A stretch of 64,000 nucleotides of DNA from Perkinsus chesapeaki ATCC PRA-425 (GCA_013115145.1 JAAPAO010000129.1:3001-67000); one strand, 5' to 3'; shown: positions 2,775 to 15,002, counted from the first letter of the stretch. The notes: a model not told the origin generated them from the letters alone. Translations and numbers: made by a program.

Positions 2775-3213
2775 ATGGATTCCAACCAACCCAAGCTTGC
2801 TAAGGTCGAGAAGGTCATCGGACGTACCGGTTCCCGTGGTGGCGTTACTCAGGTAATTGTCGTTGTCATTATTGGCTGGTTTTCGCCATGTAGATTAATA
2901 CTTGACTTGAGCACTGCTATTGCTTTAATGTGATGATTAATATTTCGCCCCTATCTGAGCTCCGGTAATGCGGAGAACATACCACTTATTAGTCTTCTTG
3001 ACTGATTAAAGCAACATCAGCTTAGTTATTCCTTTTTTCCTGTTACCTTTGCCTTTCCCTTATATCGTATTTTAGGTGCGCGTTCAGTTCATGGTTGAGA
3101 CTGCTCCCGAGCTCGCCGGCCGTTCCCTTGTCCGTAATGTGAAGGGCCCCGTCCGTCAGGGTGATATCCTTGCTTTGCTCGAAACTGAGCGTGAGGCCCG
3201 CAGGCTTCGATAA
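2775..3213 (+). CDS. RPS28: 40S ribosomal protein S28 (eS28); exons 2775-2852 and 3076-3213
   Basis: [26 protein letters not shown]|[45 protein letters not shown]. Canonical S28 motifs; phase-0 intron of 223 nt. Confidence 0.97.
2921..3013 (+). ncRNA. Intronic box C/D snoRNA (snR60/U80-like guide for LSU rRNA)
   Basis: Terminal stem TGCTTTAAT (2921-2929) / ATTAAAGCA (3005-3013), box C GTGATGA (2930-2936), D' CTGA (2955-2958), box D CTGA (3002-3005). The guide TTTCGCCCCTAT (2943-2954) is antisense to the conserved LSU sequence AUAGGGGCGAAA. Confidence 0.88.
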
Positions 3214-3505
3214 GTTTCGTCAACCACCATCACAGTTACTGGATGGGTCCGGAAGATTAATCACTCTTGGTTGAACGATAACACTGTGTAGTTGCGTTGT
3301 ATTGCATTCAACATGGGGAGGGGTGGATGGTGGTTATTAGGATGACACCGTTGCTTTGACTTTATACTCAACTTAGGATACTATTAACAGACAACGTGTT
3401 GGTAAAGTCATGAATAAACATCCCAAAGGGGTTTGACATGATGATGATGCCTTTCAATAATACATTATCGTGTGCGTAACTGATGGCTTGGATATGACAC
3501 TATAT

Positions 3506-5283
3506 CTATGCTTGATCTGGTAGACTTGTGATACCCTCCTCCACGTCTGTTACTTCCCCCTCGAGGTCTGAGCAATAACACCATTCCAGCCGCCAGCAGC
3601 CGAGGTCATGGGTACTAACCCGTATCCTCCAGCGTCGTCATAATTACGGATATCTCGTGAATCGTGACTGCTGTATCGTCGTTGTACTGCAGGAGATCCA
3701 CCTGACACTCAAGCCGTGTAGTCCTCTGCTTTATGATGTTATTACGTCCACCACCACTAGTGATGGTGTATGCTCTAGCACCGTAAGCCGCCGGGTTGGA
3801 GCCACCCATCCTATCCATTCCTAACAACAACGACAGCCCAGTCCTATTTAACCGTCGTATAGGAGTGCATCACTTGTAGGGGATGGGAGCCTCCCATCAT
3901 AGGATGACCCACGCTGCTGCAGTCTCCTCGCTTGGCACGAGCACTCTGCTCCAGGACAGTTCCTAAGTGGCATCACCAAAGCCAGGCCATCTGGTCGAGC
4001 GTACTTCTCCGTGAGTGGCCGGGATGCTGGTGATGGTGGTGGCTTGCCTATAGTAGCCTGCGGTATCCTTGGTAATGTAACAGCTTGTGCTGTTGTTGTT
4101 GCTGCCATTGTTGTTGTATCCAGCTTGCTCATGTGTACTATAGTGCATGGTGGCCTGCTACTGCTGGTCTGAGAAGAGGCCACTGATCGGAGTAGGTACA
4201 CGTTGGTGTGACAGCCTACCTGTGAGCAGCTGTTACTACATACCAATCGAAGATCAAGATCTGCATCATGGCTGAGAAGATCCCTCAGCCTTAAATGTAG
4301 CAGCTCATGCTCGTTGATGAGTTGTATAATATTAGGGCACTGATGAGCAAGCATACAGCCCTCCACCACCACAGCAGCAGCAGCAGCAGCTTCCCACCTC
4401 TCTGAACTTAACGCTCTTCACACGTTTGTTGTGCTCAATGAGCCTTAGACAGGCCTGCCGCTCTATTGGACCATCACCCAGAGACACCACACCACCCACA
4501 GCTGGTGTGCAGCATTCTCTGACACAAGTCCTATCCTTACCTCCCTTGATGCCCATATTCCTACCGATTGAAAGCATCCACCTTCCAAGTGGTCATAAGA
4601 GCATTAAAGGGCCTGGCATGAATGGGGACACTTCGGACAAAGGGAAGTAAGGATGGCATAAACTGCTGGCAGGAAGCCTCCACCCATCCAGGAGCTGCAT
4701 TTGTTATTATCATCAACTGAATCCAGCAGTAGTTCTACAGCCTCGTTAGGGCTTCCCCTACCTGACCGTAGCTGGCTGCTATGTTAATGGTTGTCATTAC
4801 AACATCGCATAGGGTAGAAAGTAGCCTGGCTTGAGCTGAGCACACACTATTGAACGCGGTCATCCTCTATCCAGCCGATCATACCCGGTCTCATCCTCAA
4901 GTTGCCAATCTGTAGTAACCGTTGCCTTTCCAGCCAAGATGTCGGTAATATAGTATCATCCCAATCAAACACTATAATGCTCCTGTTGGGACCGCCGCGG
5001 ACCTTCTTCTCTGGTGTACCCTGCTGCTGCTGGGTTACACTTGGCAGCTGTGGAGATCGTGAAGGTTCTGGAGTAGCCTGCTGAGTGTGAGCATTGTGTA
5101 CTAGCCTTGGTGTATTGACCCTTACCCTATCATAACTGCTAGCTCCCTCCCCTACTAGCCTCCGATATGGCGGCTCTGAGAGTTAAGAAAATTAAGGGTT
5201 AATAATATTGTACGGCTACCCCTTAAGTTGGACTCGTGTTGTGATGGCCGAGATAAATTGCCATAAGGAGGGTTGTAAGGCAT
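3506..5283 (-). CDS. HAD-superfamily hydrolase (DWDDT type) with low-complexity N- and C-terminal tails
   Basis: Spliced motifs IIVFDWDDTILPTSW (motif I), IITNAAPGWVEASC (II), WKVDAF (III), VVSLGDGPIER (IV), KSVKFRE. Confidence 0.75.
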
Positions 5284-5419
5284 ACAAACAACACGACAAT
5301 GACGACTACAGCTCAATAATAATTATACCACATTTCCTTCGCATCGTAACCGCGCAACACCGTGCTCGCGTATAATAGAAACAGTTGTGGTAAATACGTT
5401 GGTGAACTTCTACAGTACA

Positions 5420-8315
5420 TTATTTTTTAGAGGAACGGCGTCTCTTTTTTGCCCTCCCGAGAAGCTTCATGCCATCAGCCTTCAAATCCACAGCAGCGGC
5501 AGCCTCTCCTTCGTCCGCTGCTGGGCCCAAGCGCTTGTCTAAGTTGCTGACCTTGGACTTGGATATGCCACTAGTTGGCTTCCTTGATCGCTTCCTCATC
5601 TGTTTTTTCCTCTCTATACGTGCATCCATGAGTTGACTCATAGCCTTCGTCTTCTTAAACTCTGGATGAGTAGGATCAATTGCAAAGGCAGTGTCTTCGA
5701 ACATCTTCGTGAATCGTGGATCATTTACATTAACCTAACCAACACCAGCAACAGTGCCTCAATTATACCTCAACACCGAACTGCTGGCCAACACCGAATA
5801 CGCCATTGGCATAGTGCCTCCCCCTATTCCCTCCTGAGTACCTCCATATCCTTAGCCTTGGCCTCCGGGCCCTCCTCGGACTCCTTATGGCCAGTAATGA
5901 GCTCCAACTCCTCCTTCTGTCGTCCAGCCTCAGCTTTAGTTGCCTTGGCATCCTCATCCTCAGCAGCCATCTACGATCATGTAATAGCCTCCCACAGTGA
6001 CATCATACCCTAGCCTGTAGTCTCTTCTCTCTTTTAACCTTATCCTTCTGTTTCCTCTTATCCAGGTATTGCTCCCAAGGGCTCTTCTTCTCTGCAGCCG
6101 CTAGGCCAGCACGCCCGAGCTGCCCACTCTCCTTTAAGGCTGATGCTCGAGCCTCAACCTCCTCCGCCATAGCCTGGGTTGATGTATTGAATTTGAAGGT
6201 CATTTCACCTGAAGCCATAAGCCTATCCATACCCACCCCTTCGCAGCACCTATACCAGCAAGAGAGTCCCCTTCTTCTTTGCCCTTTTCCTCCTCCTCCT
6301 TATCGTCATCCTCACTGAGCTCCCCTCCTAGTAGCTGCTTTCGATAGTCCTCTACATTATCCTCATTAATGTCGGACTCCTCATCAGAAGATGAAGCCAA
6401 GTAACTAAAGCACCTCAACCAGGGCGCAGTGGGCCGTTATTACGCATCCAGATCAATCTCAGCGATATCTTCAGGAGTGAGCTTCTTAGATAGAAACCTC
6501 CTCTCTGGGGCAGGCTCATCCCAGGAACACTTGGCGTTGGTATGAGACTGTGCTTGCTGGTTATCATCTACATACACAATCAAATATGCTCCAAGATGCT
6601 GGTATACCCGGAATTTTACCAGGGCAACTACCTGAACCCCGCAGCGATACCCCAATACTGGCTAAATTCAAGCGACCTGGTCGAAGGGGTGCTGCGTAGG
6701 AAGAAGAATATGCTACCAGATTTCCGTCAGATCACAATCGACTTGATACTATTGAAATTGATAATGACTTCTACATTTAAATATTTGGCACCCCTCCATA
6801 TTAGTACTGTTAGTCTTCTGATACTTCTTAGGCATCTCGGTACATGTGCTAGTGGGAGGATGAGGAAACTCTTCCAACTCATCAGGTACAAACCGCAAAT
6901 CCATCATCATCGAACAGAATGAAGCTCCGATACCATCCAGCTCTAAACTCATATAAGATGGCACCATAACCCCCTACAGCCCAGACTACCATTGTAGACG
7001 AGATCGCCAGTCTCCCTGCTATCAAACTCCGCTATAGCATAGTAGTACTTTGTTCGCTGCCTTTGATACCTGGGCTCATACCGCTCTCTCCTCTAAGCGC
7101 CAAGAATTCCTCCATTACTTCCTCAAAGCTAGCTGCGCCAAATGTGCCTTGGGGTCCTGTATTTCCTTTTCCTTCTTAAGCCTCTCTGCTTCCATATCAG
7201 GCTCTTCATCAGTATCACTGGCACTGGACTCCCCAGCATCCAACTGAACCGACTCTCCCCCAAGCCGCTTTACAGGACCACTGTCTCACATCCTCTACAT
7301 CCGAATCCAACACCGGTCCTCGAACCTTCTCAATTTCCAACCTCTTCAAGCCGTAATCAGACGGGAATATCTATTAACCGTTTCATGATCCCAGAACCCC
7401 CTTGCCTCCAGTAGTACTACCCGAACACGCTTCACCTTACGCGTGGCTCCACCACCCACACTCTTCTGAGTTGAATCCAGGAAGGTTTGGAACATTACAA
7501 AGATATCAGACGCCTCGGCCTCATCCCAGTTCAACCCCAACACCTGTAGGCTTATTACTACTCACAATGGTGGTTACCGCTGCCCTACTGCAACTCTGCT
7601 AGTAGCATCTCCCTGGAGCTTTTTTGACTCGTCATCGTCACCGTATGACCATACATTGGCCTTCTCAGCCTCATCACTAAGAGCGACCAGGGGCACTCCT
7701 TGAGCTCATATAAGCCTATATTTCCTACTTGTATTTATCCCATTCGACCTCACTAGCATCTTCCTCATCCGAACCTTAACAAAGACACCTCAATACAGCC
7801 CTTCACGCATCTACAACGGTTCCAGAAACCCTACTAGTGGTATATCCTGGCTTCCCCTGATCCCCTCACCGACCCTAGCCTTCCCCTATACTACTTGCTC
7901 CTTCACTATCACTAGACACTTCGTTCCATACAAACCCACTGCCAGTAACCCCTTGCTGTTCATCCTCGTCCTCATCCTCACTTTCCAAGTCCTTCTTCTT
8001 GCCAGCAGCATAGAACCGTTTCATGTCACCACCAGATGAGAACTATACATCATTTCCGAGGTGGCCCTCGACGACCCTACTACCTTCTTATCAGTGAGGA
8101 CTTTCGAGAATCTATCATCCAGTTCAACCTTGCGCACTGCCAATGGCACTTTATTAAACCGTGCCGCGTCCATCACGAACCTGCCATAACTATTTCCTTT
8201 ACCGTGGCCTCCCTACTACATACCTCTCATCCTCCTCAACAGGCTTACTAGGAGAGGCATCACTCGGCTGAGCCGCCTTCTTCTTGAGATTTGATTTCTT
8301 TTTCAATGGGGCCAT
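5420..8315 (-). CDS. ESF1: Pre-rRNA processing protein ESF1
   Basis: VLGLNWDEAEASDIFVMF, ELDGIGASFCSMMMDLRFVPD, KCSWDEP, DLDAYLASSSDEES, and C-terminal NUC153 motif DPRFTKMFEDTAFAIDPTHPEFKKT. Acidic/basic low complexity. Confidence 0.9.
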
Positions 8316-8814
8316 GTTGGAAAGGCACAGTAATATTCCGCTCTCGTGGAACGTCATTTGCGCGCGCCATTCTAATCGATATTTAGCGCATGTTGGTGAT
8401 GCTCAGTCCATGGTTACTTTGGTTTGATAATGTCAACGTTCGATGCCAATCGTATGGTTAAGGACTTCGATAAGACGGCAAATGATGTTGCTGGTAATAG
8501 CAATCGGGTTGGGGACAGCAACGGCACAAGGCTTGTGCAGTAACGTAGTTCCAGTGCGGTGGACCGCGTGGCAGTGGTATAGCCCTACTAACACTACTGT
8601 CGCAGTAGTTTGATATTGCCGATACTTTAATATTTTAAATGTTTACTGACTGGCTAATGGAGCTTCGTATTGGAAAGTCTCGGTTCGCTGGGTTGTTGTT
8701 GTTGTTGAGAATGCATGCCCCCGCTTAATGTGTCTTCAACTCAAAAAAGGGTCACTGGTTCCATATTTAGCCGTTAAACAGAGACTGGGGGGTATATTAA
8801 ACAAACTAACAGCA

Positions 8815-11800
8815 ATGAAGGCAAGTGCTGAGAAGGCCACTAAGGATAAACCTGTCATTCCTGATAGTAGGCTGTGGTAGAGGGAACACTAGGTACCGCG
8901 GCGTGCCTTCAGAAAAACGATTGATGCATCTTCGCGAGAGCGCCGCTAAAAAGGTCGAGGAGCTTGCAGATGCTGCTCATATTGCGGAACAGAGAGGTAA
9001 GTGGGTATTAATTAGTGTACGCCTATCAGTGAGATAGAGATTAGTAGTGTGGTGTAATACCACGTTGAGTTTATACTATATATAATCACTGCTGTGTGCA
9101 AACGGTCTAATGCGTGTTGTCATCGCTATTAGTGTGGTTCATCAGTAATGTTTGTTGTCCCTCAGCTAAGGGCAAGAAAAAGGGAGGCTTTGACTTGGGT
9201 TTCCTGGCATTGAAAAAGCTGGCAAAGGACGACAAGAGCCGAAGTCTCTATGAACGGCTCGGCGGGGACCTCAGCCTTGAAACTGCTGTTGATATGGTTT
9301 ACTCCAAGGCGGTCAAGGACTATAGGACCAGGTTAGGGGTGCTGCCTATGAAGGTGATATGATAGGGTATACTTCAGAGCCTATTTCGAGAAGAACCCGC
9401 AAAAGATGGCTCAGATAAAGAAGAAAATGCAGCAGTTCTTAACGGGTTTTCTGGGTACGCAAGTCGAGTGGGCGGTGGTGTGTGAATGTCGTTGCTGTAG
9501 GTGGACGGACGCAGTATGATGAGGAGAACTTGAAGCCAGCTCATTACTATCTAAATGTTACTGATTATCACTTTGATGCTGTACATGAAATGTTTAAGGA
9601 GGCATTCCACAATATGGGCGTGAGTATACATACCATATTTCCGTCATATTTCCGGACTGACCTCCACCTTAGCGGTATATACGCTATTAAAGGCACCTCT
9701 CGACAGGTTCATCCCGATGCTATACGAGACGGTATGCAGAGGATAGGTCAGGCTAGGAAGGACATTACTGCCGGATGTAAGGGCAGCAGCCTTTGCTACT
9801 ACAGCCTAAAGGGGGCGTGGGGATAGGTACGGTACGGATGGCTGTGGCACGGAGGAATATAGAGTTTGATAAAGGGGTGTTGTGGAGGCGTCTGGGTGGG
9901 CTGGATGGGTTTCGATTGCTCATGGATAAGGTATATGAGCTTGTATTGAGGGATCCAAGGTTGAAGCTACTTTTTAAAGGTATATTGCGCAGTTACGGTT
10001 GTTATTGATATTGTGGTGTGATAGGCTATGATATTGAGAGGATTAAAAGGGCACAGACACTCTTTATTGGGGAGGCACTTGGGGCACCTAAGCAGTACCA
10101 AGGTAAAGCGGTGCTGAGGTTAAGGGCTACACTATGCTGATGCTGTAGGTGCGGACCTTGCTATGGTGCATAGAGACATGGGCCTAAATGATTATATATT
10201 AGACTGCTTCTTTATGAACTTCGGGAAGGCGCTTACCAGTAAGTGCCTTATCCAGTATATTGAGATATCATGGTTATGGTAGGCATGGGAGTTGATGATG
10301 ATACGCTTGACCAAGTTATGGTAACTCTTGAGGGCTTTAGATCTGGTAAGTATTGCAAGGAGGGAATGCCCACAGGTTTAGCATTGTGAGGGTGATGTCT
10401 CTTAAGGGTCTTAAATGGAGGTTTTCACATGAACAATAATGGTATATTATTATTGCAGTGTGAATTCATTACTACTGCATCGCGGCATTCATCGTGTATA
10501 CGGCAAGATTCATCACACTGCGCATTTGCTCTATCTCCTCTATTGTTGTTCTTGACGTAGTCTTTGTTGTTGTTGTGGCACTTCAAGCGGTGAGAAGTAA
10601 TCAACGTAATCATTGTGGCCTCCCAGTAATGGGTTGGGATTGGGTTCTGAGCTAAGGGAATAGATACGTCCTGAGAGAAGTGCAATTATTACAAATGAAC
10701 TCAAGCTAACAACGATACTGCAGTAGACAGCAATTGTGTGACAGCGGCATGCATTCTATTTAGTAATATTCGACATACAGTGTATAGAATAGTTAAGTTA
10801 GTAATGATCTTGTTATATCATCTTCACATTGCTCTAACAGTTGTTAGTATTATATCAGATATACTTGGGAGGCAAAGAGGTATATCCTCGGCAGCTAAGA
10901 TAGTGGATGGCAAGAGTATACTGGACAGGTGACTCTACAACGCTTAGTTACATTTATTTCCCAGCTTAAAGCATCTTCGTCCACTTTTCAGAGTCGGCGG
11001 TCAAATAGCAGTTGAGTCCATTGTTGAGACCATGTTCTCGGGCATACTGCGAGATCCCCGGGTGCTCTACTTCTTCACATTGAATGGTATGGTTATAGAC
11101 AAGCTCAAGGAGAATGTGGTAGAACTGACCGCCATGCCGCCGCCGCACCGTGCCGACTGCTACTGTGGCTGCTTGTAGGTGATGGTTTTGGTCGGCCTCT
11201 TTGGTGGCCCGCGTAAATACGATTTATCCAATATTAGTAAAGTCCATTATCCTATTAACATAACCGACTTTCATGTCGACTGCTTCCTTGAGAACCTCAC
11301 TGTTGCCTGCGTGCTGAATGAGTTGGATGAAGCGCTCACTGATGATATAGCAGAGGCTGTGGCGAAGGTCAGGCCTAGCATTACCATGGGTAGGATCTCT
11401 TTAGCAGTCATTTATTCTGCTGCCATGGCGCTCTCATTGCCTCTTGTTGAGATGAGTCTTATGATACCTCTCCCAGGTTGCACAGTAAGGTTGGAGTTGG
11501 CCAGGAAGCGCACAGAGTCGGCCGGCACGCAGGGCTTATGGGCTCAGATTGGGGAGCACCGTGGCCTCGAGACATTTATCGATCGCCTTTATGACTGCTT
11601 GCAGGATGATGATAGGGTTAAACACTTCTTTACCGGCTCTAAACTTGAGGAGCTCAAGAAAAATCAAGGTAAGGTCGGAGAACTGTAACCGTAAGATACG
11701 CCTGGCAGGTTCCTATTTGATGGAGATGTTTGGCGGCCCGAGTGACTACACCGGTCGGGACTTGCCTACGATACATGCCAATATAAGAGTATCCGATTTT

Positions 11801-14800
11801 CACTTCGACACGTTCCAGGAAATCGCCATGAGACAACTTCGAGGTCTCGGTCTCGATCCGGACGCCGTCGATGAATGTATGTTGATGTTGCAGTTGTTTG
11901 TTCTTGTTGAGCAGCCCTGGCATCCTCAGGCATGGTGCTGCTGGAGACTGTCAGGGACGATGTGGTGAATCCAGCTCTACGTGACCATGATGTGTTGAAA
12001 GTGCAGCAGGCCGCCAATCGCAAGCCTCTGTATGTTGAACGCCACTCTCACCGCTTGAAGTGTCGCGCAGAAACCCTAGCTCAACCTTCCGCTTCGAATC
12101 ACCACGAGGAAACACCGTAGAGCTGAAGGGCTGCGGTTGTTCGAAATTTTGTACGTAGTATTAAAAGTGAGTTGATTATAGGCTATTTCGGGAGTGATAC
12201 GGTTGACCATCCCAATCCTTTGAATCCTGTGATTCTACCCATATGCTCACAAGTCCTTACTCATCATCGGTATGTGATACTGCAGATATGATAGAATAGG
12301 CGGCGAACGTGCAGTTACACAGCTGGTTGATGAGCTGTATGGCAAGGCCTTGACAGATGACAGGCTTAGGAGCTTCTTTGAGAAGAATAAGGCAAAAGTA
12401 AGGGGGGGTGGGGCATAGCACCTTCGCTATGTACTCGTGACCATCTTACGGCTCACAATTCCTCTCCCACAGTGCTAAGCCAGTTTACGCTGTGACGCAA
12501 TGTTTCACGAGCGTTCATAGACGTTAAACGTCTGACGTTCTCTTTATGGCTCAACGCGACTACTTTCAGAGTCGTGCTGCTCCAGTGGGCTGCTTCGTAG
12601 CAAACTGTTTGAGTTTCTTCTTCTTCTTCTGCATAGGTTCAATCAATAAAGAAGAAGATGACTCAGTATATATGTGGGGCAGTTGGTGGGCCTTCAGCTT
12701 ATGATGTTGCCGATATGAAACCAGCCCATTACGCTATGAACATTACCAGCTTTCACTTCGATGCTGTTATAGAGATCCTTCGGGTTATCATGGGGCAAAT
12801 GGGCATGTCGACGTCCGATGCGGCGCAAGTGTCAAAGTAGGCTTCTTGGGGGCACCGCGTGGAGGTGGAGCTGCTGCTCTTCAGGGCATTACAGGGCGCG
12901 CGGGAAAGTGTATGCACCGGTTACATTGTACGCACTGAAGTGGCCAGGAGGAGCCTGGCTAAGGGCGCTGATCAGATGTTCCGGAGGTATCTAGGAAGTA
13001 CACTGAGTGTTCGAGGGGCTAGTGATTTCAGGCTTGGTGAATCGGAGGGCCTCACTAACATATTCAATATGGTCTTTAATATGGCTGTCAATGACCAAAG
13101 GATAAAGCACTTCTTTGAAAAGGATGTGGATAGGATAAAGCAAGGGAAGCTGACGTATATCATAAGCCAGCTTGGAGGGCCCAAGGCCTACGTCGGCCGG
13201 GACCTGCTGGATATTCATAGGGATCTCGGGGTAGTGATAAGGGACCTGCTGAAGAAGATGATGACGTAGTTGTTCAGGTTACTGACTACCACTTTGACTG
13301 TTTCATTGGTATATTCGGTAGAGCATTGCAAGGGGCTGGAATCGACGATGGCACCATTGATGAGGCCCTTATCACCTTGGAGCCACTCAGACGGTCAATA
13401 TTAGGAAGAACAGAGGAGGACGAGTAACAAGACAGACAGAGCTACATCTGCGTTCGACTTGTGGAAGAGCACTATACATAGGAATGGACAGTCTCGCCCG
13501 ATGAGATGGGATCCTTTATTTCTCTTCGTTTTCCTGTAGTTCAATACGTGCCACTGGTGTAGCCCAACCTTAGTAACGTACAGAGCTCCGTTTGGAATTG
13601 AATGACTCGCCGCTGTTCAACCTCGGCATGTATGAGGCATCCTGCCAGGTTCCGCGCCCTTGCCTTTAAAGACGGTGAATCTATGATAGAAAGAATCGGA
13701 GGTTAGGCTACTATTGTCGTTCCCTATGCGCATGCTGCCGTATAGGGGACATGAATTTGGAGACGTTCGTGGAGTTCACATTCCAGTTGGCAGTGAAAGA
13801 CGATCGTATACGTTATTACTTCGACAAGAGCCGGTCTAAAGTGAATCAGATAGAGAAGAAATTCTATCAGTATTTATCTGGAGTATTTGGAGGACCGGTA
13901 AGAAGGAGGACCACGGCAATTTCGCGGCGCGTGACTCGCAGTGTCGGCCCCTCAGGTCCAGTATAACAGCGCAGATTTGAAACCAGCTCACTACGATATG
14001 AATCTGACTAACTTCCATTTCGATGCCTTCCTGGAGGCAATGGCGGCCGCAGCGGTACAGATGGAGCTTTCGGAGGATGTTGCTGATGATGCTATAGTTA
14101 TAGTTAATAGAGTTCGAACAGATGTTACCACAGGTAAGCTTACTCATTTCTACCAAGTTTTCATGTTGATACCTCTTTGCCGACGATCCTTTGTCGAACC
14201 AACTTGGTTGATTGATCCTCCGTAGTGGTGTCTTCAACGCTGACCTCATCTGGTCCTTTCTCTCATCATCTGTAGCCGAGGGCGGCGCTAACTGTGTACA
14301 TTTCCGTCTCACTCACAGTTGCAGCAATTCACTTAGCTCCTAGGGCTCTCCCTCTAGGTTATTCTATTCGGCATGAAGTAGCGACAAGGCGAACGCACGG
14401 TATGGGTGAAACGCTTTATCAAAGATTAGGTGGAACCGACGGTCTCACAGACTTTGTGAGCCGGTAAGACTATCGATGCCCGCTCTTTGGTGAGTAGAAG
14501 TGGTCGTAGACTTTACGAAGTGGTCGAGCGAGACAAACGCATTAATAACTTCTTTGGAGCTGCCAAGCTAGCTGTTGTAAGGAAAGGACAGACGGAGTTC
14601 CTTGCACAAGTAAGCTGATGCCCATAATACAGATCAATTGCCGAGAGTTGCCTAGGCTCTTGGGGGTTCTGAAATGGAGTACAAAGGGAGAAGTCTAGAG
14701 GAGATACACTCGGTATGGATCAGCAGTTCCGTTACCTTAGGCTTTCGCTGCATACATTGGTGGCTTCGTGTAGGTATTGTCGATGACAGACTACCATCTC

Positions 14801-15002
14801 GATTCTTTCTTAAATGATGTGGCACGGGCATTAAAGTGAGCACTGATCTCGCCGCGTTGCTGCAGTAGTGTGATGTTATGTATTCGACTTCAGGGATCTC
14901 GGACAAGACGATGAGACCGTTGATGAGGTTATCGTTAGCCTGGAGCAACTGCGAGGTCAGATCCTCAAGACCTACTACGTTCGAATGGGCTATCAAGTGT
15001 GA
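8815..15002 (+). CDS. Multidomain globin: eight tandem group-I truncated (2/2) hemoglobin domains
   Basis: Eight repeats of (L/I)(Y/W)xR(L/I/V)GG...D.R...F...GGP..Y....H....T..HFD; proximal His F8 present in all eight. All three inter-pair junctions splice in frame by GT-AG rules. Start codon tentative; stop TGA at 15000-15002. Confidence 0.88.

Follow-up and report, generated by a model that had tools for sequence, protein, structure and literature searches.

The Perkinsus chesapeaki ATCC PRA-425 DNA analysed here (GCA_013115145.1 JAAPAO010000129.1:3001-67000, 64,000 nucleotides (nt), hereafter the window) carries on its forward strand a long run of truncated haemoglobin (TrHb) domains, which raises the questions of whether one gene or several occupy the locus and what the encoded globin would do. 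An earlier note on this DNA had read positions 8815-15002 as a single polypeptide with eight TrHb1 domains built as four A-B pairs (odd domains A, even domains B). Comparison with related genes argues for one gene encoding one eight-domain polypeptide. Taken as a whole, the evidence makes it very probable that this is a Perkinsus-type gene for a probably cytosolic polyglobin composed of four rigid two-haem modules, with oxygen (O2)-dependent nitric oxide (NO) chemistry, or other small-ligand redox chemistry, as its most likely activity.

Gene Model and Globin Domains

The locus, at 8430-15002 (+), is described by a 30-exon spliced model in which all 29 introns follow the GT-AG rule. The reading frames were joined by hand under this rule and then adjusted against homologues, in a region of about 48% G+C where open frames are short and the phase shifts every 60-200 nt. 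TrHb hallmarks (L-Y-E-R-L-G-G, F-F-E-K, G-G-P, and H followed by N-I-T-D-Y-H-F-D) recur in the frame translations. The spliced coding sequence of 3,504 nt is open throughout and encodes 1,167 amino acids (aa) with a single terminal stop codon at 15000-15002, and the C-terminus lines up with those of the homologues. Most of the introns are short (22 at 40-87 nt, typically ~46 nt), while seven measure 169-513 nt. The exons are as follows:

8430-8493, 8771-8866, 8913-8996, 9166-9331, 9378-9454, 9501-9619, +, exons 1-6
9707-9776, 9827-9979, 10025-10102, 10149-10238, 10283-10345, 10859-10928, +, exons 7-12
10992-11118, 11179-11389, 11477-11668, 11709-11876, 11930-12029, 12286-12397, +, exons 13-18
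12637-12836, 12885-12986, 13032-13230, 13278-13423, 13649-13701, 13746-13897, +, exons 19-24
13956-14133, 14358-14463, 14510-14609, 14656-14712, 14774-14835, 14894-15002, +, exons 25-30

The model contains eight TrHb domains in the order A-B-A-B-A-B-A-B, each within a few bases of the coordinates first proposed for it:

9243-9775, +, domain 1, A type, aa 108-225; F8 His codon 9542-9544; B10 Tyr, E7 Ile, E10 Lys, E11 Met
9877-10345, +, domain 2, B type, aa 243-354; F8 His codon 10169-10171; B10 Tyr, E7 Ile, E10 Ala, E11 Gln
10915-11389, +, domain 3, A type, aa 373-490; F8 His codon 11245-11247; B10 Phe, E11 Val
11533-11964, +, domain 4, B type, aa 509-621; F8 His codon 11774-11776; B10 Tyr, E11 Gln
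12025-12921, +, domain 5, A type, aa 642-759; F8 His codon 12727-12729
12973-13403, +, domain 6, B type, aa 777-889; F8 His codon 13216-13218; B10 Phe, E11 Lys
13680-14133, +, domain 7, A type, aa 907-1024; F8 His codon 13989-13991; B10 Phe, E10 Lys, E11 Phe
14411-14969, +, domain 8, B type, aa 1042-1157; F8 His codon 14707-14709

The eight domains align with one another almost without gaps, and the identities between odd domains (28-44%) and between even domains (32-41%) lie above those between odd and even domains (22-33%). A linker of the form T-x-G-(C/Y)-x-(V/I)-R is found at the four A>B joins, and its R/T/G/R residues are nearly invariant in 44 pairs from the family. Thus, the domain count, the in-frame splicing of all junctions, the alternating A/B pattern, the conserved linker between odd and even domains and the eight quoted motifs around a proximal His, all described in the earlier note, were recovered in the spliced model.

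Three window exons score above the 21-bit cut-off of the Pfam family Bac_globin (PF01152). Single-exon matches include the read-through 11179-11685 in domain 3 (E 4.9e-8) and the domain 5 exons at 12637-12837 (E 3e-6) and 12278-12415 (E 4.5e-5); most others are sub-threshold because each domain is spread over 3-4 exons. The same family finds eight stretches in collinear full-length homologues, with E-values of 5e-102 and 6e-97. In a phmmer search of the PDB, the top match was the Tetrahymena group 1 trHb (E 7e-19), and Mycobacterium tuberculosis HbN was matched at E 2e-14. Judged by these matches, the domains belong to the group 1 truncated haemoglobins (T1, or trHbN).

One Polypeptide or Four Tandem Genes

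The single chain depends on three introns that lie between one A-B pair and the next:

10346-10858, +, intron at the domain 2-3 junction, 513 nt, phase 1; donor GTAAGT, acceptor tatatcAG
12030-12285, +, intron at the domain 4-5 junction, 256 nt, phase 2; GTATGT...ctgcAG
13424-13648, +, intron at the domain 6-7 junction, 225 nt, phase 2; GTAACA...ctgccAG

Nothing of the locus was found in the only two RNA-labelled runs listed, both small, which counts against the overall reading of the gene; for this reason the single polypeptide was tested by comparison. The comparison draws on four Perkinsus olseni protein fragments that tile model residues 355-1059 and that, by their identity, are the orthologue of the window gene; this orthologue is available only as fragments on short contigs:

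P. olseni orthologue fragments: KAF4752218.1 (77% identity), KAF4721646.1 (79%), KAF4741455.1 (82%) and one unnamed fragment (76%)

At the domain 2-3 junction, the splice product ...FRS-D-ILGRQRG... matches ...LRA-D-VLNRKRG... of a P. chesapeaki homologue (54% identity over domains 1-4), in which the corresponding residues, R-A-D-V-L-N, lie within one uninterrupted exon. The P. olseni contig L001 has its acceptor for this junction at the same site as the window, and the DNA similarity between the window and P. olseni restarts at 10852 and stops at the exon edges of the model. The domain 4-5 intron splits the Leu codon of P-L-Y-D-R-I-G-G at the start of domain 5. The exon of this domain opens immediately after a stop, without an ATG, and the residues P-L are provided in phase by the GTATGT donor at 12030. 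In the P. olseni orthologue, the intron at this very site is 47 nt long, and the homologues P0004 and P0092 read ...ANRKPLYDRLGG... across the junction. Similarly, at the domain 6-7 junction the P. olseni orthologue (L005) carries an intron of ~110 nt whose donor and acceptor fall at the codon positions seen in the window, and the homologues P0019 and P0092 read ...GRTEEDEFRALAFK... across it.

Continuity is also seen over the entire length of the protein. Complete transcripts of Oxyrrhis marina (MMETSP0469), encoding 1,154-1,159 aa, run collinear with the whole of the model, and so do uninterrupted open reading frames (ORFs) of 1,120-1,265 aa on three metagenome contigs (L002-L004). The metagenome polyglobin ORFs adjoin eukaryotic genes (mitochondrial carriers, MCM, SWEET). 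Residues 5-1160 of the model align with homologues of 1,154-1,190 aa at 41-48% identity, and in the multiple alignment the model shows short indels only, mostly N-terminal, with the three junction linkers conserved. The claim of a single polypeptide is therefore upheld by the open spliced frame, the junctions in P. olseni and P. chesapeaki, the Oxyrrhis transcripts and the intronless metagenome ORFs.

The competing explanation is that the locus holds four tandem two-domain genes, each ending at an in-frame stop past the putative donors at 10346, 12030 and 13424. Such stops do occur within 0-90 nt of each donor (at 10387, 12118 and 13425), the three junction introns are long compared with the typical ~46 nt, an ATG-led hydrophobic ORF lies upstream of exon 12, and the RNA runs are silent on the matter. 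However, long introns (277, 239, 224 and 169 nt) are also present away from the pair-to-pair junctions, so intron length is no marker of gene boundaries in this locus. Domain 5 would have no available start codon, its first residues coming from the upstream exon, and the breaks required between genes correspond to an uninterrupted exon in P. chesapeaki and to short same-site introns in P. olseni. Given, in addition, the linker sequences conserved over the junctions and the presence of all eight domains in one frame in Oxyrrhis and in the metagenome ORFs, four separate genes are extremely improbable.

The hydrophobic ORF itself occupies 10783-10858, within the 513-nt intron, and reads M-I-L-L-Y-H-L-H-I-A-L-T-V-V-S-I-I-S in frame with exon 12. 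It is read as intronic, but a separate downstream gene, if there were one, would start here. A Met start of the P. olseni fragment P0004 ahead of domain 3 was also considered as the beginning of a separate gene and rejected as a truncation artefact, lying 67 nt from the contig end.

Introns 12030-12285, 12398-12636 and 13424-13648 measure 256, 239 and 225 nt in the window versus 47, ~38 and ~110 nt in P. olseni. On this comparison, the intron sites are conserved and the introns themselves have expanded in a lineage-specific way.

The N-Terminal Region and the Gene Start

Ahead of domain 1, the model encodes a helical region that belongs to the family but not to the globin fold:

8430-9242, +, N-terminal region, ~107 aa, with length and motifs conserved across the family

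The earlier note had begun the gene at 8815; that ATG sits within exon 2, and the start is placed at ATG 8430 because the N-terminal region, whose first part is encoded by exon 8430-8493, is homologous to the N-termini of the family. It aligns with those of the homologues P0098, P0110, P0003, P0106 and P0111. No globin match, Pfam family or Atlas lead was obtained for this region, and no hydrophobic signal-like start was seen by eye, no predictor having been run. The region may play a role in oligomerisation or docking.

The boundary between exons 2 and 3 is uncertain, with 8866/8913 and the equal-length alternative 8824/8871 as candidates. The former is preferred since its donor, GTAGGC, is also used after exon 19, at a junction read across by the P. 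olseni orthologue. An intron of 19-26 nt linking exon 2 to the RGVPSE frame was ruled out as too short, which left the two 46-nt alternatives. A start at ATG 8924 combined with an acceptor at 9365 was also discarded, as the N-terminus is longer in the homologues and the VYFR insertion is absent from them.

Over 9003-15002, the window does not differ from two DNA assemblies, which come from two studies. Either is possibly the source of the DNA, and their agreement argues weakly against assembly frameshifts.

Residues of the Haem Pockets

Pocket positions were mapped through alignment to the Tetrahymena trHb and scored in 23 full-length proteins. The numbering of this reference is taken to be Tyr25 for B10, Gln46 for E7, Gln50 for E11 and His73 for F8. 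The F8 His is present at all eight positions in 23 of the 23 proteins, CD1 is nearly always Phe and E7 is apolar everywhere. The two domain types differ at E10 and E11: A positions carry Lys/Arg at E10 and Met/Phe at E11, whereas B positions carry Gly/Ala/Ser at E10 and mostly Gln at E11.

As read from the alignment, the window protein has the AB hinge G-G in six of its eight domains (G-E in domains 4 and 6), the EF hinge G-G in seven (G-A in domain 2) and Phe at CD1 in all eight.

Predicted Structure of the A-B Pair

AlphaFold models were built for the orthologue in P. olseni (which shares 77% identity with the window protein), without haem, with domains 3-4 as the A-B construct; the A-B and B-A constructs were given two alignments of equal depth, comprising 44 family segments. 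The A-B construct (255 aa) reached a pLDDT of 92.7 and a pTM of 0.82, and in this model a single long helix extends from the end of A through the linker. The B-A construct (257 aa) had the same pLDDT (92.7), a pTM of 0.58 and a lower-confidence linker. These models suggest four rigid A-B pairs joined by flexible B>A tethers; it weighs against this arrangement that pTM is an indirect gauge of inter-domain rigidity and that the models come from an orthologue without haem.

By Foldseek, the A-B model matches the Tetrahymena and Paramecium trHbs with a TMt of 0.92-0.94 and an rmsd of 1.2-1.3 Å, which corresponds to the 2-on-2 fold. The Foldseek matches are single-domain group 1 trHbs only (TMt up to 0.94, TMq ~0.44), and no didomain precedent was found in the PDB by this search.

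Family Distribution and Evolutionary History

A phmmer scan of 1.84 billion representative proteins, with one window exon as the query, returned 76 matches, the best of which had 8-18 matched stretches. Those with names are 'hypothetical proteins' of P. olseni and P. chesapeaki. The earlier note had framed the gene against the reported lack of globins in apicomplexans; the closest proteins are the 77-82% identical P. olseni fragments, so the gene is of the Perkinsus type (Perkinsozoa) and that remark does not apply to it. The annotated proteins of P. marinus ATCC 50983 were ruled out as this gene; at 39-47% identity they are paralogues.

Domains in all fetched proteins were typed with hidden Markov models made from the window A and B domains. 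Strict (AB)n alternation is the rule among the closer relatives, with n reaching 8 in P. olseni (16 domains, 2,375 aa), and 22 fetched proteins besides the window model consist of exactly the N-terminal region followed by (AB)4. Several paralogues are found in each of P. marinus, P. olseni and P. chesapeaki.

A per-domain phylogeny, one of the checks proposed in the earlier note, shows that the domains group by their position in the chain rather than by protein. The maximum-likelihood tree covers 68 domains over only 118 columns, and many of its forks are unresolved. The position labels require 14 changes versus 49.8 when shuffled, with none of 200 shuffles as good, and support is high for domain 3 (100/99) and domain 1 (98/91). 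The tree has the A domains on one side and the B domains on the other, and it pairs domain 2 with domain 6, and domain 3 with domain 7, as sisters. Since the domains cluster by position, the eight-domain layout would be older than the split of these lineages. The tree thus points to an ancient (AB)4 layout, with a history that fits an (A B A' B') arrangement duplicated once.

With regard to genomic surroundings, no synteny was found between the window and the P. chesapeaki locus L006. In the latter (L006:2852-8117), a Got1-family gene lies directly upstream of the polyglobin gene, and the window has no such neighbour. A P. olseni protein of 1,473 aa (P0096) combines Got1 with eight globin domains and is probably a merged gene model. 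On the metagenome contig L004, which represents a compact eukaryotic genome, two intronless polyglobin genes (1,265 and 1,166 aa) stand in tandem at 3146-10537, between mitochondrial-carrier genes and beside an MCM gene.

Proposed Function

In the favoured reading, one haem b would be bound in each domain, with the F8 His as its ligand. The final helix of A would continue into the conserved linker helix (T-x-G-C/Y-x-V/I-R...) that leads into B, producing a fixed didomain, and the B>A connections would be flexible, leaving four rigid two-haem modules on tethers. The B pocket, with TyrB10 and GlnE11 as in Mycobacterium HbN and the Tetrahymena trHb, would stabilise O2 and support NO dioxygenation, in which, as for M. 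tuberculosis HbN, NO and O2 yield nitrate and a reductase recycles the ferric haem. The A pocket would be apolar (Lys/Arg at E10, Met/Phe at E11), its Lys being a possible sixth ligand as in Chlamydomonas THB1; LysE10 is the sixth haem ligand in THB1, THB2 and THB4 (PMC7082302). The chain would thereby carry out O2-dependent chemistry on NO, or redox chemistry on another small ligand, at high haem density, with the ferric haem re-reduced by a separate reductase. The Chlamydomonas proteins THB1/2/4 are reduced by the diaphorase of nitrate reductase or by Fd/FNR (PMC7082302). The O2-dependent NO chemistry is favoured because of the B pocket, the biochemistry of the family and the need for a separate reductase.

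Several observations weigh against this reading. Not all pockets of the window protein are canonical: B10 is Tyr in five of the eight domains and Phe in domains 3, 6 and 7, and GlnE11, confined to B domains, is present in three of the four, domain 6 having Lys, while E7 is apolar in all. LysE10 is no reliable predictor of hexacoordination (PMC7082302). No reductase partner, fused or adjacent, and no NO-responsive context was found at the locus, and nothing in the sequence separates NO dioxygenation from O2 storage or buffering. As for domain 6, its counterpart in the P. olseni orthologue has Tyr at B10 and Gln at E11, and most of the family has Tyr/Phe and Gln at these positions; the pocket of the window domain may be changing or relaxing.

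The same protein might instead serve in O2 storage, buffering or facilitated diffusion, as a 'protozoan myoglobin', or in micro-oxic O2 scavenging. Its closest solved relatives are the ciliate trHbs, historically seen as myoglobin-like O2 binders, a chain with many haems offers more O2 capacity per osmotic particle, as the invertebrate polymeric globins do, and the protein is conserved in free-living heterotrophs, for which host-derived NO is not an issue. However, TyrB10/GlnE11 pockets usually release O2 very slowly, which is poor for storage or delivery, and storage would not need a fixed hetero-pair with two different pockets; a storage or scavenging role is accordingly thought possible and rather unlikely. 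A further reading, in which the locus is a decaying or unexpressed paralogue with non-canonical pockets (Phe at B10 and Lys at E11 in domain 6), could draw on the several paralogues in each of the three Perkinsus species, on the RNA runs without the locus and on the introns expanded relative to P. olseni. Against it stand 30 exons with an open frame, intact splice sites throughout and all eight F8 His kept, together with a 77-82% identity to the P. olseni orthologue in which similarity is limited to the exons, and decay of the gene is considered very improbable.

A bolder extension of the NO dioxygenase reading would treat the A-B pair as a redox couple within the chain. With LysE10 and MetE11, and possibly hexacoordinate as in Chlamydomonas THB1, the A haem would transfer electrons and so re-reduce the catalytic B haem (TyrB10/GlnE11) after each NO dioxygenation, and the N-terminal helical region would dock a reductase or bundle chains. 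This is a speculative and unlikely proposal; if true, the polyglobin would be a self-relaying, multi-site NO dioxygenase, a design that, to our knowledge, has not been described for any globin.

A role in survival within host phagocytes, put forward in the earlier note, is argued against by the occurrence of the same eight-domain protein in the free-living Oxyrrhis marina and in uncultured protists.

Relation to Known Globins

Multi-unit T globins made of multiple 2/2 repeats have been identified in silico, and T1 multi-unit sequences occur in protozoan parasites, according to a review (PMC7475203, citing Hade et al. 2017, IUBMB Life 69:479). THB5 of Chlamydomonas reinhardtii contains four consecutive 2/2Hb domains (PMC7082302). 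The window protein resembles them in carrying tandem TrHb1 units in one eukaryotic polypeptide and in being known from sequence only. It differs in its eight units with strict A/B alternation, its conserved A>B linker, its position-specific orthology across genera and its conserved N-terminal region of ~100 aa. The eight-domain polyglobin is thus a member of a known but uncharacterised class of multi-unit T1 globins. The earlier statement that no characterised example was known stands in so far as none has been characterised at the bench, and gives way in that multi-unit T1 globins had already been described in silico.

Close relatives include hypothetical proteins of P. olseni, P. chesapeaki and P. 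marinus, among them KAF4713054.1 (8 domains), KAF4665176.1 (16 domains) and XP_002764598.1, and the Oxyrrhis MMETSP0469 transcripts, which belong to the same family with the same (AB)n build. None of these relatives is annotated as a globin or characterised, and some paralogues have 10-16 domains. No paper on Perkinsus or Oxyrrhis globins was found in the open literature.

The single-domain trHbs of Tetrahymena pyriformis (3AQ5) and Paramecium caudatum (1DLW), M. tuberculosis HbN (1IDR) and Chlamydomonas THB1 (4XDI) share the 2-on-2 fold (TMt 0.81-0.94), the F8 His and the CD1 Phe. The B domains are like HbN and the Tetrahymena trHb in their TyrB10/GlnE11 pair, and the A domains like THB1 in their LysE10. 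In contrast, the single-domain proteins have 116-136 aa and one haem, the A domains of the window have Met/Phe rather than Gln at E11, and E7 is apolar throughout the window protein. Many linked haem domains and tandem duplication are also known from the polymeric 3-on-3 globins of invertebrates (nine-domain in Artemia, didomain in Ascaris and Daphnia). These differ in being animal, extracellular O2-transport proteins with a 3/3 fold, and are related only through the globin superfamily.

Significance

Perkinsus species are major shellfish parasites. What is new for their globins is the gene model, the junction evidence, the positional orthology, the E10/E11 alternation and the predicted rigid A-B unit. 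These lead to testable predictions: the chain should have a mass of ~130 kDa and carry eight haems, its A-B pairs should be rigid, and its pockets should follow two chemistries. Protein chemistry of any kind on the A, B and A-B constructs would be without precedent in this class. The comparison corrects the view of the gene as an apicomplexan oddity or a host-phagocyte adaptation: the (AB)4 polyglobin appears, from its distribution and domain history, to be ancient and to have been conserved in Perkinsus, Oxyrrhis and uncultured protists related to them.

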